DNA from: Diplonema japonicum
Taxonomy: Eukaryota; Protista; Euglenozoa: Diplonemea
Reading direction: 5' to 3'
Length of the DNA stretch: 64,000 nt
Assembly (NCBI GenBank): GCA_964019335.1
Contig: OZ025685.1
Location: forward strand, 248,001 to 312,000
Part shown: positions 12,472 through 59,881 of the stretch, piece after piece
Position numbering within the stretch: the stretch's first letter is position 1
Layout of the letters: the number at the start of each line of letters is the position of its first letter
Made by a program: the position numbers and the translations under genes
Notes under the pieces: model-generated
What the model saw: only the letters and a program-made list of their open reading frames with translations
What the model was told of the DNA's origin: nothing
Database searches by the model: none

Positions 12472-14562
12472 ATGGCGCGAATGGGGCTGAACATCGCTGC
12501 AATGGGGAGCCGAGACGATCCGCCTCTATCAGCTAGGCTGCACAATGCGATGTCGCCCAGGACGGCTAGAGGCCTGAACACAGCGAGGCTGGGGAATCAC
12601 ACACAAAGAGGAAACCTTTCCCATAGAGGCCCCAAGACTCCACTACGCTCGCCTTTAGCTCTGAGTGAGAGGTATTCCGCAGGGCTAGCATCGCCATCAT
12701 CAAGCTCGCTTCAAAAACGTTTAAGCAGCAACGCGTTAAAATCCCTGAGGAAGGAAGACAGCACAGGCACGGAAACAGAACCAAGCCCGAGTGCAACAGT
12801 ACTGTCGGTGGACATCCCGAAGCTCTCGTTAGGCGCCATCGAGACAAAGGGCAAGGCACAGGCGGAAACGAGAAAGAAAAAACGTATCTCAACAGATAAT
12901 GTCTTCTGCAATGTTGAAGCTGCGAAGAAAAAACTGGAAGCGGACGGGATCGACATCGATGCTCTTAAAGCCGCGTTCAGCAAAACGGATGTTAACGATT
13001 CTGGTCTTGACATAAACGAGTTCAGAAACCTTTGGAAAATGGTTTTCCCGCAACGGCCTTTGGACGAGTCAGCCTGGAGGTACATCGACAGAATCTTCAT
13101 AGAAATCGACAACGACGATTCTGATGAAATCTCGTGGGAGGAAATTCTGTCGTACCTCGACAAATCCCGAACGTTGGTCGAACGTGAGAAACCTCCCACT
13201 CAATGGAAGGAGATCATGTTTCGGTTTGTGGGTTACACTGAGGATGCCTATGATGATTCTGACTCCTTACAAGCCATCATGGTGGCTTTGTACAAATTCG
13301 TCTCGCAGATGGTCGTTGTTTTGTCTATCGTTGTTTTAATGATCGAATCGCTACCTTCGATGCAGAAGGAGGACCCAAATGAATCTCCTGGAAGCACCAC
13401 TACATTTGTTATTGAAACATGTTGTGTTGCGGTGTTCACGGTGGAGTTTTTCATGTGGATTATCTCGTACCCAACATCCGAACAATGGATCGATTCAGAA
13501 GGAAAAGCCCATGTCCTAGACAAGGACGAAGAAGTGTGGCCCCGACCGGACACGATGGAAACAATCAAATGGAGGCTGTTTTTCAAAGAACAGAACACAT
13601 ACATCGATTTTTTATCGATTGTCCCGTATTACATTCTGTTAATCGTGGACGGGCAGAATAACATTTCAGCGTTGGCATCTGTTCGTCTTTTACGGCTTTT
13701 AAGACTCCTGCGTATTACCAGAATTTTAAAATTGGGCCGATCTGGGTCGTATGGGAGAGCCCCGGAACTAGGCGCAGCATTGCAAAAATCTATCACATCG
13801 TTGTTGTTTCTGGTGATGCTCATTGTTATCGCAACGACGATGGCGTCATCGTGGATGTTCTACGCAGAATTAGAACAGGCTTCGTTCAACCCAGTTCTTG
13901 AGAAGTGGGTTCGAAATAACGATTCTGACTACGTCGATGCTGGGGAAGTACTTCAAATGCAATCTATCCCCGAAGCCCTCTGGTGGGGAATCGTCACATT
14001 GACCACTGTAGGGTACGGCGACCTCTACCCGATTACAATCGGCGGGAAGATAATCGCAAGCGTGACAATGTTGGGTGGCCTTATTGTAGTTGGATACCCC
14101 ATCACCATTCTAACCGGGACTTTTCAGATTATGGAGTACGAACGGTTCATGAAGGAGGAACAACTGGATCGTTGTAGGGAATTTTACCAGGGCATCAAAA
14201 CATGGGTCAATTCCCAAGACGGTATCGATGTGAAATTAGAGTCGGAAAACGGGGCAACAATGAAGGGGAACACCAGCAAACGATCTTCTCTGCTGCCGCA
14301 GCCGACCGCCATGGCGGCGAACCAGGATATTGTGGATTTGTTCAACGGGTTGGAGAACCGGATAGCGGAGAGGCTTGGGAGGATTAAGAGGAAGTTGAAC
14401 AAGCTGGAGTGCGACTCCGACGTCAGTGAGAGTGAAATCGACACTGATTCTTCAAGCAGTTGCAGCAGCAGCACTTCGTCCGCAACCTCGCTCACACCCG
14501 CTGCCGCTGCGAATGAACCTTACGCGAGAAACCTTGCCGTTCCAGTTCTACATATTAACTGA
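12472..14562 (+). CDS. Voltage-gated-type K+ channel (6TM) with N-terminal EF-hand pair
   Basis: Selectivity filter TLTTVGYGD, S4 VRLLRLLRLLRITRILKLGR, EF-hand-like loops DVNDSGLDINEF and DNDDSDEISWEE. The ORF-track extension upstream of 12472 is homopolymer UTR. Confidence 0.9.
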   Translation: MARMGLNIAAMGSRDDPPLSARLHNAMSPRTARGLNTARLGNHTQRGNLSHRGPKTPLRSPLALSERYSAGLASPSSSSLQKRLSSNALKSLRKEDSTGTETEPSPSATVLSVDIPKLSLGAIETKGKAQAETRKKKRISTDNVFCNVEAAKKKLEADGIDIDALKAAFSKTDVNDSGLDINEFRNLWKMVFPQRPLDESAWRYIDRIFIEIDNDDSDEISWEEILSYLDKSRTLVEREKPPTQWKEIMFRFVGYTEDAYDDSDSLQAIMVALYKFVSQMVVVLSIVVLMIESLPSMQKEDPNESPGSTTTFVIETCCVAVFTVEFFMWIISYPTSEQWIDSEGKAHVLDKDEEVWPRPDTMETIKWRLFFKEQNTYIDFLSIVPYYILLIVDGQNNISALASVRLLRLLRLLRITRILKLGRSGSYGRAPELGAALQKSITSLLFLVMLIVIATTMASSWMFYAELEQASFNPVLEKWVRNNDSDYVDAGEVLQMQSIPEALWWGIVTLTTVGYGDLYPITIGGKIIASVTMLGGLIVVGYPITILTGTFQIMEYERFMKEEQLDRCREFYQGIKTWVNSQDGIDVKLESENGATMKGNTSKRSSLLPQPTAMAANQDIVDLFNGLENRIAERLGRIKRKLNKLECDSDVSESEIDTDSSSSCSSSTSSATSLTPAAAANEPYARNLAVPVLHIN

Positions 14563-14626: not shown

Positions 14627-14660
<34 letters not shown>

Positions 14661-14674
14661 GGATGGGAATACCA

Positions 14675-14802
14675 GGTGGTGGGGATAACATGGAAATGTA
14701 AACAGATGTGTTGTTCGCTGTTGATACCTCCCCGTCGGTCATCACCGGTAGCGCCCGAGTGGAAGAACGTAACGCAGATGCTCTGGGTGGCGAACAGGCA
14801 GC
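14675..14802 (+). ncRNA. HDV-like self-cleaving ribozyme (copy 1)
   Basis: P1 GGTGGTG(14675-81)/CATCACC(14740-46); P2 GCTGTTG/CAGGCAGC; P3 ACC/GGT; L3 TCCCCGTC; P1.1 GG(14747-48); P4 CGCCCGAGT/GCTCTGGGTG; J4/2 G-C(14791)-GAA. There is a 2-nt insertion between P2 and P3. Confidence 0.75.
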
Positions 14803-14976
14803 AAACTACACGGGCTACCCGGGGCGCCCCGGCTGGGGTTGAGCTGCACACCGCACGCATTAAGGACACGACGCGGAACGCAGAAGGAGCTACAGCTAGG
14901 CCGAGGTGCGCCCCCTGTAGTCAAGTAAATGGTGCTTGTGCAGGGTGCCCCCACCGGCTTCCTTTAAATCATCGAG
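14675..14976 (+). mobile_element. Ribozyme-headed non-autonomous retroposon (SINE/SIDE-like), copy 1
   Basis: Aligns over ~300 nt with 19203-19515. Lies between oligo(T) runs. Ends CCTTTAAATCATCGAG-T(n), similar to the 3' ends of the LINE-like fragments. Confidence 0.75.
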
Positions 14977-15075
14977 TTTTTTTTTTTTTTTTTTTTCCCA
15001 TTCCCCACTTCCTCTTTACGTTCATACTGATATGTAATTAGTACCAGGATCTCCTGAGCTGGAGCCCACTTGGTG

Positions 15076-19202: not shown

Positions 19203-19336
19203 GGTGTTGGGGATAGCATGAAAATATAAGGAAAACATCAGATGTGTTGTTCGCTGTTGACCTCCTCGTCGGTCATCACCGGTAGCACCCGAGTGGAAGA
19301 ACGTAACGCAGATGCTCAGGGTGACGAACAGGCAGC
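19203..19336 (+). ncRNA. HDV-like self-cleaving ribozyme (copy 2)
   Basis: P1 GGTGTTG(19203-09)/CATCACC(19274-80) with one U.U mismatch; P2 GCTGTTG/CAGGCAGC; P3 ACC/GGT; L3 TCCTCGTC; P1.1 GG; P4 CACCCGAGT/GCTCAGGGTG; J4/2 A-C(19325)-GAA. Confidence 0.78.
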
Positions 19337-19515
19337 AAACTGCACGAGCGCAGAATCTTGGTTACCCGGGACGCCCCGGCTGGGGTTGAGCTGTACACCG
19401 CACGCATTAAGGACACGACGCAGAAGAAGCTACAACTCGGCCGCGGCGCGCCCCCTGTAATCAAGTAGACAGTTCTTGTGCAGGGCGCCGCCAACACCGG
19501 CCTCCTTTAACTCAT
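19203..19515 (+). mobile_element. Ribozyme-headed non-autonomous retroposon (SINE/SIDE-like), copy 2
   Basis: Diverged copy of 14675-14976. Starts just after a T-tract and ends CCTCCTTTAACTCAT-(AT)n-T(n). Confidence 0.75.
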
Positions 19516-20000
19516 ATATATATATATATTTTTTTTTTTTTTGTTCTTTCTTCTTTTCTTTCCAGATAGCGATAGGTGACGCACGGCACAGAAATTGCCT
19601 CGCTTTTTTCTTTCTTTCTTTCTTTTTTTGCATTATTCCCGAGCTACCTTTACTTTCGGAACAAGTATTAAAAAAAAAAAGATTGAAGGGGTGGTTTTTT
19701 TTTTTTTTATTCACAGTGAAAAGAAGGAAAAGGTGTACAAAAAAATGCGACGCACCACCACTACCTCCCGGTTTTGGTTTCTGATACCTTGTTGCCCCCC
19801 CCCCCCCCCCCCCCCCTATTCATTGACAAGCGCAGTTTGCAACGTAGCACTGTGTAAGCGAGCCCACAAGCAAAATGCTTTTTGTTGAATAGCTCCTCTC
19901 CCCCCTTCTTATTATCTTCATTCAGGCTCTCTATTTTATTTTATTTATTATTATTATTATTTTTTTTTTTTCATTTCGTCAGTCCGTCCTGTTTTTTTTA

Positions 20001-50741: not shown

Positions 50742-51419
50742 CAGGATGGTGCAACAATACCTCCTGAAAGTAGTGACGGTCCGTGACGCCAGAGCAGCGG
50801 AAAAAAGCAAGAGAGTGCTCACCTCCAACCCTTGGGATGAGGTAACGACAGGGAGGCAACATGATGTTCCGACGGAAGCGTTGCTGAAGGCGAACGGGGC
50901 GTCAGGCGCGGTCCTGACCTTTCATTTGAAGAACGTCCTCAAGTGGCTAAGAGGCCTACGATGGTACGATGGTAAGAAGAAAACTTCCGTCACTACAATC
51001 GAACTCGCCATAGACTATGAGCAGACCACCCGCCGGTCACTCATAGGTCCCCTCGACGATCAAGACCTGCTCACGGAGAAGGCCGCAAGGATGCGATACA
51101 TCTTGGGTCGCATCCAGAAATGCTCAGCACGCTGTGGAAGGTCAGCCTTCCCCGCCAACGCCAAATCAAGGGTGCATACCCTTCGACATCTTGGGGGCCC
51201 GACGGCACACGGCTACGACAGGAGACCACTCTTCTCCTCGAGCCAAACCCCCCCCTACCTAACACGACTCCAAGCAATGTTTCTCGCCCAGATGCCGTCC
51301 ATCTCATCGCGACAAACAGCCACCGCAGGCACCAGACAGCAACCGCAGAACGGTGACCGATTAGTGTGAATTTCTACCTGAACAGTGAGCACCCCCATGC
51401 ACACTGAAATTTTATCGAG
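50742..51419 (+). mobile_element. 5'-truncated LINE-like retroposon fragment
   Basis: QYLLKVV, NPW and KWLRGLRWYDGKKKTSVTTIELAIDYE are collinear with 58154-59525. Preceded by T21; ends in a stem-loop + ATCGAG + T-run. Confidence 0.75.
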
Positions 51420-58153: not shown

Positions 58154-59522
58154 ATATACAGAACGAGACGAAAATTGGGAGAGGTGTGGGAGCGGTGCCA
58201 GAGACTTGCCAAAGGGTACCAAGACCCGACAAGAACGACACCTTTGGGCCCGATAGGCAACGCGATGAAGCGGTGGCTCCCGAAGATCAGCACAAACTGG
58301 GGGCAGTTCACCGAAATGCTAGCTGAGAACAAGGACAAATTCGCACATGTAGTGCGAGAAAAGCTAAGGTCGGGACGTGCGGAACACATACAGGACAGAA
58401 GACGCTCGATGGAGGGGCTAGACCGGGGCGCAGACCCACGCACGAACGACCTGTGGCGAGAGCTGATGAAACTCGGACCACAAGGAGCAATGGCAGCGAG
58501 AGACCTCCGGAGGATCGTGGCGGGAGGGGTTTTCTACATCCACCCAAAGGCGTGGTACCAGGACAACATCACCAGACGGGTACCACCCCCAGAGGGCGAG
58601 CAGAGCGAAAGCGAGGACAGCTCGGAAGAGGAAGGGGACGAGACACACGAGCGTGTGAACAAGAGACCAACAACAGACGAGGTCACATGCGACGCGTGCG
58701 GTGCGGAGGAGGACGAGAGCAACAGAAGGAAGTACATGCAGAAGTAGTGGCCAACAAGACGGAAATGCCAATCTGCATGCAGCTACATGGAACGCTCCCG
58801 CGTGGTCACCGATCACACCAACACCGGCTGAGGAAGACGCAGGACTACCTGCTGGAAGTGGTGGCAAAACGAGACCAGCTTCTCCAGGACAAGAGAATGC
58901 TAGAAACGTACCCGACGCACCCCTGGAACAGATAACGGAAGGAAACGCTCATGCGCCACCTGAATGGAAGGAGCTGAGGAAGCATGTGAGGGAGCCTGAT
59001 GATGAAGCACGGAGAAGACATCGTCAAGTGGCTCAGAAAGCTGAAGTGGTACGATGGACCGAGGAAGACGACAGTCACCACAATGGAACTCGTACTAGAC
59101 TTCGAGAACACGCTGGGCGTCGAGCCGATCACGGGGAAGAAGGGTGATCTAGACATGATACAGAAGAAACGGAGTTTCCACGGCCTCCTGGAAAGAATCC
59201 AAGAAGGGTGGGACACAGCACGCATACAGAAGAAGGTCAGAGGCAAGCGGATCTTCCCAGCGGAGAGCCAGAAGAACCACGCGCTTAGAACCATAGGTGC
59301 GAAGAAGAGTCTGGGATGGAACAGAAGGCCAGTTTTTGCATCAGAGAAAACCAAGAAGGACCTTAAGAAACTGGGCAGAAAGTGGCAAGAAGAAAGAGAG
59401 GATACTTTGAGAAAGGCAACACAGCCAAAAAAGAAAGAAAGGCCGAGGCCCCAGAAGGGAGAAAGGGGTAGATAAGTAGAGACAAGGGGGACGTTCCAAA
59501 ACAGGAACCTCCTTTATCTCAT

Positions 59523-59525
<3 letters not shown>
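58154..59525 (+). mobile_element. 5'-truncated, frameshifted LINE-like retroposon (C-terminal region)
   Basis: Broken ORFs 58175-58747, ~58750-58935 and 58999-59475 with LRRIVAGG, a CxxC remnant (CDACG) and KWLRKLKWYDG..TMELVLDFE. T19 before; 3' hairpin + CCTCCTTTATCTCAT + long T-run after. No RT domain retained, so the LINE call is inference. Confidence 0.72.
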
Positions 59526-59681: not shown

Positions 59682-59881
59682 NNNNNNNNNNNNNNNNNNN
59701 NNNNNNNNNNNNNNNNNNNNNNNNNNNNNNNNNNNNNNNNNNNNNNNNNNNNNNNNNNNNNNNNNNNNNNNNNNNNNNNNNNNNNNNNNNNNNNNNNNNN
59801 NNNNNNNNNNNNNNNNNNNNNNNNNNNNNNNNNNNNNNNNNNNNNNNNNNNNNNNNNNNNNNNNNNNNNNNNNNNNNNNNN
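59682..59881. other. Assembly gap (200 N)
   Basis: Run of N. Confidence 1.

Follow-up and report, generated by a model that had tools for sequence, protein, structure and literature searches.

The stretch analysed here, 64,000 nt of contig OZ025685.1 from the Diplonema japonicum assembly (positions 248,001 to 312,000, forward strand; referred to as the window), carries large open reading frames (ORFs) that all lie on the + strand, as fits polycistronic gene arrays. One of them encodes a K+ channel and ends at 14562, 112 nt before the first nucleotide (G1) of a 316-nt dispersed repeat, which is found in the window at 14675-14976 (+, copy 1) and 19203-~19529 (+, copy 2). An earlier reading of the letters alone (the sequence-only reading) had described a ~300-nt repeat ~110 nt after the channel stop, with a second copy at 19203, and alignment and genome-wide counts bear this description out. 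The repeat is probably a short interspersed element (SINE)-like, non-coding retroposon of a diplonemid, whose first ~130 nt would form a self-cleaving ribozyme of the hepatitis delta virus (HDV) type and which would be mobilised by long interspersed elements (LINEs). Its features in the window are listed below, with the paired (P), joining (J) and loop (L) regions of the double pseudoknot under their usual names.

14628-14656, +, T run of 29 nt, read directly; likely target or target-site duplication (TSD) partner of 14977-14996
14657-14674, +, 18-nt piece of transfer RNA (tRNA), ACCCGGATGGGAATACCA: A59-A73 of tRNA-Val(AAC) plus the post-transcriptional CCA
14675-14804, +, HDV-like ribozyme motif, predicted scissile bond 14674/14675
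14675-14681 with 14740-14746, +, P1
14682-14713, +, J1/2
14714-14723 with 14795-14804, +, P2
14724-14725, +, 2-nt insertion between P2 and P3
14726-14728 with 14737-14739, +, P3
14729-14736, +, L3 (UCCCCGUC)
14747-14748 (GG) with 14730-14731 (CC), +, P1.1
14752-14789, +, P4
14791-14794, +, J4/2, CGAA, putative catalytic C at 14791
14805-14955, +, SINE body, non-coding; no significant blastn or blastx match to the sampled LINEs and no tRNA or Rfam match
14956-14976, +, SINE 3' terminal motif GGCTTCCTTTAAATCATCGAG, partly common to LINE 3' termini
14977-14996, +, T run of 20 nt after the element; target or TSD, no poly(A) tail
19203-19529, +, copy 2, older subfamily, LINE-B1-type tail CCTCCTTTAACTCATATAT with (TA)n

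Copies 1 and 2 are 85% identical over their aligned stretch. The genome-wide search that the sequence-only reading had proposed gave 1330 first-look candidates in the 62.5-Mb assembly, 40 of which were scored and proved 84-90% identical to copy 1; the 15-nt head GGTGGTGGGGATAAC has 717 exact matches in the genome, and the 27-nt core ACCTCCNCGTCGGTCATCACCGGTAGC has 529. Thirty copies were aligned with 120-nt flanks, and their majority sequence, identical to natural copies at L002 and L003:1501-1816 (L-numbers denote genomic loci extracted from the assembly, C-numbers its contigs), served as BLAST query and numbering frame. The 5' edge of this alignment is sharp and falls at GGTGGTGGGG, window 14675, so homology does begin at G1 of P1, as had been claimed. 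The 3' edge is also sharp, at ...AAATCATCGAG (14976), also written ...TTTAAATCATCGAG, and nearly all 30 copies have a T-rich flank on either side. Many copies differ from one another at 0-5 positions per 316 nt, which indicates recent expansion or activity of the family. The repeat is thus short, non-coding, dispersed, high-copy and sharp-ended, all as expected of a SINE. Summed over four DNA-like public runs, the depth of element words was several thousand times that of the single-copy flank, a figure that is a rough indicator only. TSD-like repeats are clear in single copies (TTTTCTAT in L020, TTTAGT in L006, T10CCA in L014); their mean length is 9.3 nt, against 8.2 nt in mismatched flank pairs, and is not separable from the T-rich background.

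A tRNA-derived head was ruled out, since ARAGORN found no match in the element. One locus that looked like a distinct element with the same ribozyme head (L048) turned out to be the SINE split by a 1.08-kb insertion (L048:1645-2723, C60), which holds an internal direct repeat of ~110 nt and is bordered by duplicated SINE sequence, ~18 nt long (GTGACGAACAGGCAGCAA). At L002:1768-1897 a partial inverted SINE head lies beside a full copy and creates a long hairpin, which explains spurious sub-threshold Rfam matches to plant microRNA models.

Every element of the double pseudoknot that the sequence-only reading had named, including the catalytic C at 14791, was found in copy 1 where it had been placed. 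P1, P3, L3, P1.1 and J4/2 are perfect in this copy, while 9 nt of J1/2 are missing and CGTAAC is inserted in the P4 loop. In family numbering (L003:1501-1816), P1 pairs 1-7 (GGUGGUG) with 73-79 (CAUCACC), J1/2 spans 8-48, P2 pairs 49-58 with 122-131 around one bulge, and P3 pairs 59-61 (ACC) with 70-72 (GGU); L3 is 62-69 (UCCYCGUC), P1.1 joins C63 and C64 to G80 and G81, P4 pairs 85-94 with 106-116, and an unpaired G117 precedes J4/2, C118-G-A-A, which abuts P2. In copy 2, position 5 of P1 is a U-U mismatch, G has changed to A just before the catalytic C, and the P4 loop contains the same CGTAAC insertion.

A structure descriptor was written that called for a 6-7-bp P1 with G as its first base, three Watson-Crick pairs in P3, an L3 matching YCCNNGN(1-2), GG after P1, CNRA in J4/2 and a P2 of at least 6 bp adjoining P3. 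In ~250 kb of real sequence it matched only copies of the SINE repeat and the 5' ends of LINEs; random sequence from a second-order Markov model gave two matches in 3.84 Mb (both strands), ~0.5 per Mb. Scoring 31 pairs in each of six SINE variants gave 186 pair cells, 98.4% of them standard pairs; sliding the 3' partners by 1-3 columns reduced this to 28-57%. Differences between SINE subfamilies spare the helices, falling in L3 position 4, the P4 loop, P4 pairs that remain paired, the G before the catalytic C, and J1/2.

The same HDV-like architecture was found in four LINE families (A1, A2, B1 and B2), each of which begins with it at nucleotide +1, G1. These families were sampled, not surveyed genome-wide, and their 5' boundaries come from independent copies with unrelated flanks (L064 and L065 for A1; L066 and L067 for A2; L042, L049, L050 and L051 for B1; L071 and L072 for B2). 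Their helices are as follows.

LINE-A1 and LINE-A2: P1 GGGAAC/GUUCCU; P2 GGUGGA/UCCACC; P3 GCC/GGC; L3 UCCACGAG (A1) or UCCACGAC (A2); J4/2 CGAA
LINE-B1: P1 GGGGCU/GGCCCU; P2 CUGGGGA/UCCCCAG; P3 ACC/GGU; L3 UCCACGU; J4/2 CAAA
LINE-B2: P1 GGGGGC/GCCCCU; P2 CCCGGCGC/GCGCCGGG; P3 ACC/GGU; L3 UCCAAGC; J4/2 CAGA

The core conserved between SINE and LINEs consists of P3 (ACC/GGU or GCC/GGC), L3 UCCNNG.., GG for P1.1 and a G-C-N-R-A junction. With the SINE set beside the four LINE groups, standard pairs occupy 90 of 92 pair cells although the sequences of P1, P2 and P4 differ, and changes on both sides of the helix occur at 12 positions of P1, P2 and P3 across the five element families. Each LINE family has its own P4 hairpin, and A1 and A2 differ from each other by compensatory changes in P4. 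Read from these alignments, covarying P1, P2 and P4 around a fixed putative catalytic core are the signature of selection on an RNA structure and not on a DNA promoter. The ATG of the first ORF lies within J1/2 in all four families. Other ribozyme-headed LINEs have been described with the start codon of their first ORF in J1/2.

LINE-B1 codes for an apurinic/apyrimidinic endonuclease (APE)-type endonuclease and a reverse transcriptase. Residues 600-1560 of its protein are 100% identical to a transcriptome-derived ORF (EukProt, Trinity contig), so this strain, or one nearly identical to it, has LINE-B1 in its RNA. The first ORF of LINE-A (L064:1867-2499, LINE-A1) has an OTU-like cysteine protease domain (Pfam PF02338, E = 1.2e-7), precomputed Pfam hits place an OTU-like domain also in related proteins, and the start of the second ORF of LINE-B2 (L068:~800-1100) has a DGNCQF-type motif. 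A sixth HDV-like candidate, pointed to by a covariance model of the SINE, is located shortly before the first ORF in a third LINE group (L039:1427-1551, C52). It has P1 GGUGGG/CCCACU, P3 ACC/GGU, L3 UCCACGA and J4/2 CGAA; its putative boundary is taken from a single copy, and the flank before it is A-rich, not T-rich.

Two 5'-truncated LINE remnants are present in the window:

50752-51419, +, LINE-A1 remnant; tblastn match 50752-51282; ends ...GAAATTTTATCGAG, then a T run
58169-59525, +, LINE-B2 remnant, degenerate; tblastn match 58169-59385; ends ...CCTCCTTTATCTCATCTC, then a 30-nt T run

The protein of the LINE-A1 remnant is 98-99% identical to many genomic copies. The two remnants belong to families with 1180 and 1039 first-look candidates, respectively, in which many copies are 98-99% identical. 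A run of N, standing for masked or withheld letters, occupies 59683-59880, ~160 nt downstream of the T run of the LINE-B2 remnant.

The link between the SINE and these LINEs lies in their 3' ends. LINE-B1 ends in ...GACTTCCTTTAACTCATATA followed by (T)n, LINE-A1 in ...TTTTATCGAG(T)n, also written ...GAAATTTTATCGAG, and LINE-A2 in ...GAAATTTATCAAA followed by a T run. In the tail of copy 2 (...CCTCCTTTAACTCATATAT) the terminal 17 of 17 nt are identical to LINE-B1, and in the main SINE family 14 of 15 are. The main family ends in ...GGCTTCCTTTAAATCATCGAG and some copies in ...CATCAAA, and these ATCGAG and ATCAAA variants mirror LINE-A1 and LINE-A2; other subfamilies keep the first ~270 nt and have a different terminal ~50 nt. 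This pattern suggests that SINE tails may have been exchanged to match different LINEs, and the terminal motif is presumed to be the recognition site for the LINE reverse transcriptase. A LINE family within the window had been proposed as the mobiliser, a role with which the two remnants and the common tails would agree. An origin by internal deletion, in the manner of R2 derivatives, was not borne out for the LINEs examined. Beyond the ribozyme core and the terminal ~17 nt, blastn and blastx gave no significant match between the SINE and these sampled LINEs, so the SINE does not derive from any of them by simple internal deletion.

The junctions immediately upstream of G1 bear on the RNA 5' end. 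Most SINE copies have extra bases between the upstream T run and G1 (among 30 aligned, 20 have A at -1 and 17 have CA), and LINE copies likewise carry extra bases before G1. At some junctions these extra bases are pieces of other cellular RNAs. The first 15 nt of the piece before copy 1 (14657-14674) are the 3' end of tRNA-Val(AAC) genes (L073, L075:1442-1515); TTTTT comes after these genes, and CCA is not part of them. Since the 18-mer does have the CCA, it corresponds to A59-A76 of a mature, CCA-tailed tRNA-Val. The same 18-mer precedes G1 of a LINE-A1 copy (L074, C13:176485-176514, minus strand). A tRNA-Leu(AAG) 18-mer with CCA precedes G1 of two SINE copies (C95:257857 and C95:283761), and 16 nt of the same tRNA-Leu piece precede LINE-A1 in L065 (L065:1900-1914); the tRNA-Leu genes were confirmed in L077-L080. 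At L005:1377-1500 (C86:158144-158267) a complete 5S ribosomal RNA (rRNA; RF00001, 86.9 bits) and an 8-nt linker, CCAAACCA, stand before G1 of the SINE, and a 30-nt T run directly precedes the 5S unit.

Non-LTR reverse transcriptases jump end-to-end between templates, and the methylated A58 of tRNAs blocks reverse transcription so as to set the 18-nt primer-binding site of retroviruses. The tRNA and 5S pieces are best read as template switches, in which the reverse transcriptase would have crossed at the element RNA's 5' end to another RNA and, on tRNAs, stopped beside position 58. The human U6/L1 chimeras likewise have a second cellular RNA copied onto the 5' end of a retro-copy, and retroviral primer-binding sites have the same 18-nt length, from the tRNA 3' end to position 58. 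Unlike in U6/L1 chimeras, the acceptors here are mature CCA-tailed tRNAs and 5S rRNA, and for LINE and SINE RNAs alike the predicted cut site is the donor end. The junction chimeras at G1 thus support a discrete RNA 5' end at the predicted scissile site.

The 5S junction also allows a different reading, in which a master cassette is transcribed by RNA polymerase III (Pol III) from an upstream 5S rRNA or tRNA gene promoter through ribozyme and SINE to a T-run terminator, the ribozyme serving to remove the promoter RNA and no polycistronic read-through being involved. L005 has the order that such a cassette requires, a complete 5S rRNA (86.9 bits), the linker and the SINE, with no TTTT until the T run after the last SINE base. 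However, the tRNA pieces at junctions are the last 18 nt with a non-encoded CCA, so they come from mature tRNA and contain no promoter boxes. By analogy the 5S unit would be a retro-copied RNA too, and the 30-nt T run before it resembles ordinary insertion junctions. It is moreover the only 5S-type junction among the CCA-type junctions listed, and the SINE of L005 differs from the majority sequence of the 30 aligned copies. We consider the cassette improbable.

The sequence-only reading had proposed that the element is cut from a host transcript, and the orientation of the copies bears on this. Strand switches occur in only 10 of 79 adjacent pairs of copies neighbouring each other on a contig (first 100 listed copies; binomial p = 5.5e-12), and at 21 of 26 loci (p = 0.0025) the SINE shares its strand with the longest ORF in its flanks. 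This bias fits co-transcription with host gene arrays and to that extent the proposal of excision from read-through RNA, yet insertion into sense-strand T or pyrimidine tracts alone would lead to it equally well.

Eleven SINE copies have a spliced leader fused at the junction, in the form ...CTGTACTTTATTG joined to GTGGTGGGG (for example C1:890281, C2:842506 and C13:292877). The six that were inspected (L043-L048) have full or 5'-truncated leaders, lie at unrelated sites and have several different 3' tails. The fusion point is the product expected of trans-splicing at CAG/G, the AG being formed by the junction A and G1. As these copies show, SINE RNA of the + strand exists, and an insertion creates an acceptor that can be used. 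They amount to <2% of heads. The core is intact in 4 of the 6 inspected copies, and in L043 a 23-nt deletion takes out P3', P1' and P1.1. The plus orientation of the leader-fused copies, together with the plus-oriented ORFs of the LINEs and the identical tails, rules out that the element lies on the minus strand and has a poly(A) tail, a reading that the T runs at both ends had raised.

The leader also bears on the host. We take the entry 'Euglenozoa 14' to be a Diplonema leader. The full leader of the fused copies, ACCAACGATTCTAAAGCTACAGTTTCTGTACTTTATTG, differs from it at two positions (PMC3795323). The best named relatives of a LINE protein from this genome are in Diplonema papillatum, at 33-49% identity. 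A trypanosomatid host had been assumed in the sequence-only reading; leader and LINE relatives point instead to a diplonemid-type euglenozoan other than D. papillatum, and they also rule out identity of the repeat with SIRE/NARTc of Trypanosoma cruzi. The 3' part of the leader occurs at 217 genomic sites, often a few kb from contig ends (C5:515, C6:1908, C21:1582, C36:2084, C38:2204, C49:1992), which suggests leader-bearing retro-copies or subtelomeric repeats.

A discrete 5' end at G1 could also be set by transcription from an internal promoter in the first ~130 nt, as proposed for Pr77 of L1Tc, with the fold vestigial or secondary. The junction chimeras prove only that such an end exists and not how it arises, and the intact cores of some leader-fused copies show that there are RNAs which were not cleaved. 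In T. cruzi, one 77-nt stretch is reported to serve both as promoter and as ribozyme (PMC3383444). Against a promoter stand the covariation of P1, P2 and P4 over five element families around a fixed core, the sense-strand bias, which fits read-through transcription, and the chimeric junctions, at none of which an extra G of cap type was seen. We judge an internal promoter to be quite unlikely as the source of the 5' end.

The self-cleaving retroposon is the preferred reading, and it would work as follows. The element would be transcribed within a longer RNA, most likely a host polycistronic transcript because the copies are mostly sense-oriented in gene arrays. The ribozyme would fold and cut immediately 5' of G1, releasing element RNA that has lost the host sequence upstream and starts at a defined 5'-OH. 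The 3' motif of this RNA, ...CTTCCTTTAA-TCAT-CGAG/ATA, is that of the autonomous APE-type LINEs of groups A and B, whose reverse transcriptase would copy the SINE RNA by target-primed reverse transcription at T-rich sites and without a poly(A) tail. On reaching the G1 end the enzyme would often jump to another RNA, so that the junction would retain CA, CCA, the last 18 nt from a mature tRNA or an entire 5S rRNA. Anatomy, copy number, boundaries, common tails, covariation between families, junction chimeras and strand bias are what the sequences show; catalysis itself, the polymerase that makes the precursor, and the pairing of LINE with SINE subfamilies are what we infer from these data.

It is conceivable, though doubtful, that each insertion acts in addition as an RNA-processing module, composed of a (T)n-CAG trans-splice acceptor (T tract, junction CA and G1) and then a self-cleaving ribozyme, which, given hundreds of intact sense copies lying between genes, could set or modulate mRNA 3' and 5' ends genome-wide, including those of the K+ channel transcript. 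Use of the acceptor is suggested by the 11 leader-fused retro-copies. Cleavage and trans-splicing would compete for the same junction.

Several observations weigh against a functional ribozyme at the head of a LINE-mobilised SINE. Within the SINE family there is no covariation among the six variants, whose copies are too alike, and the helix table between families was hand-aligned at anchored positions by seeking complementarity, which biases it towards pairing. With a covariance model built from SINE variants, the LINE heads score no better than E ~1. Rfam models of HDV type gave no match at gathering score or E <= 10 in the window, the SINE or the LINE heads; this weighs little, as Rfam models do not encode pseudoknots. 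Published HDV-like ribozymes have been found mainly by structure descriptors. Of the Infernal-type and covariation checks that had been suggested, the former gave nothing with Rfam, and the latter showed compensatory changes between element families and not within the SINE. The SINE starts with G1-C79 where the LINEs have a G-U wobble, its P2 is bulged, and in copy 1 an AT (14724-14725), absent from most of the family, separates P2 from P3. The HDV ribozyme begins with a G-U wobble at the start of P1. L1TcRz, an active natural HDV-like ribozyme, starts with C1 in a G-C-rich P1, so a G-U start is not needed (PMC3185411), and among R2 ribozymes P1 measures 6-7 bp and P2 5 bp or more, with J1/2 forming a long loop (PMC3774820). 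The intact cores of leader-fused copies imply that cleavage is incomplete and that some RNAs escape it, and the extra A or CA before G1 is explained by inference only. Finally, among the public runs listed for the locus none is of RNA, and the four examined are contigs that behave like DNA and show repeat-collapsed pieces only.

That the resemblance to HDV is coincidental and the 5' region a non-catalytic protein-binding or packaging structure would agree with the lack of an Rfam HDV match and with self-cleavage being predicted here from sequence, and is nevertheless highly improbable, given a random descriptor rate of ~0.5 per Mb and the recurrence at +1 of five families of a 3-bp P3, U1 and G6 of L3, a CC/GG P1.1, and an unpaired G that leads into C-N-R-A directly against P2.

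Close parallels are found in trypanosomatids. L1Tc and NARTc with L1TcRz (Pr77), and ingi and SIDER, are likewise pairs of a LINE and a short non-autonomous partner in euglenozoans with polycistronic transcription (PMC3185411, PMC4035085). L1TcRz is likewise an HDV-like ribozyme in the first nucleotides of its element, with cleavage at +1 proposed to free the element from co-transcripts. However, Pr77 positions 27-77, rebuilt from published primers (PMC3185411), have no sequence similarity to the SINE. Pr77 is 77 nt long, and the motifs described here measure 112-132 nt with a J1/2 of 41-59 nt. P1 starts with G here (G-U in the LINEs, G-C in the SINE), whereas L1TcRz starts with C1 and Pr77 with CCCTGG. 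Identity or homology with Pr77/L1TcRz was ruled out on these grounds of sequence and starting base. L1Tc and ingi elements end in poly(A) tails, unlike the elements described here, which have a specific terminal motif followed by T-rich DNA and no poly(A), and the SINE is not a deletion copy of its LINE, unlike partners of the RIME, NARTc and SIDE type.

The R2 ribozyme is likewise an HDV-like double pseudoknot with a long J1/2, a conserved P1.1/P3/L3 core and covarying P1 and P4 between lineages (PMC3774820, PMC3414825). The SIDE elements of R2 are likewise short and non-autonomous and keep a ribozyme head and the 3' end needed for reverse transcriptase; they are internal deletions of R2, which the SINE is not. 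R2 carries a restriction-like endonuclease. It is site-specific for 28S ribosomal DNA and often cleaves upstream in 28S sequence (PMC3774820). The LINEs of the present genome, in contrast, have an APE-type endonuclease, dispersed T-rich sites and a predicted cleavage at their own +1. The genomic HDV ribozyme has L3 UCCUCGCU, a 3-bp P3, GG for P1.1 and J4/2 CGAA directly before P2. Most SINE copies have L3 UCCUCGUC, and the layout of P3, P1.1 and J4/2 is alike, whereas J1/2 and P4 are longer, the context is different and the Rfam HDV_ribozyme model does not match.

No report of ribozymes in nuclear retroelements of diplonemids turned up in a literature search. Insects (R2 and others) and trypanosomatids (L1Tc/ingi, SIDER) are known to have non-LTR elements headed at the 5' end by HDV-like ribozymes. 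The elements described here would extend this solution to the kinetoplastids' sister lineage, with unrelated sequence and in several covarying variants within one genome. These naturally diverged variants may be used for structure-function work. The elements also provide a concrete LINE/SINE system with T-rich targets and no poly(A) tail, in which tRNA and 5S chimeras abutting the predicted cut site would be a genomic record of the RNA 5' end. For the biology of this diplonemid, hundreds of potentially self-cleaving sites in sense within gene arrays are candidates for post-transcriptional regulation of the host.

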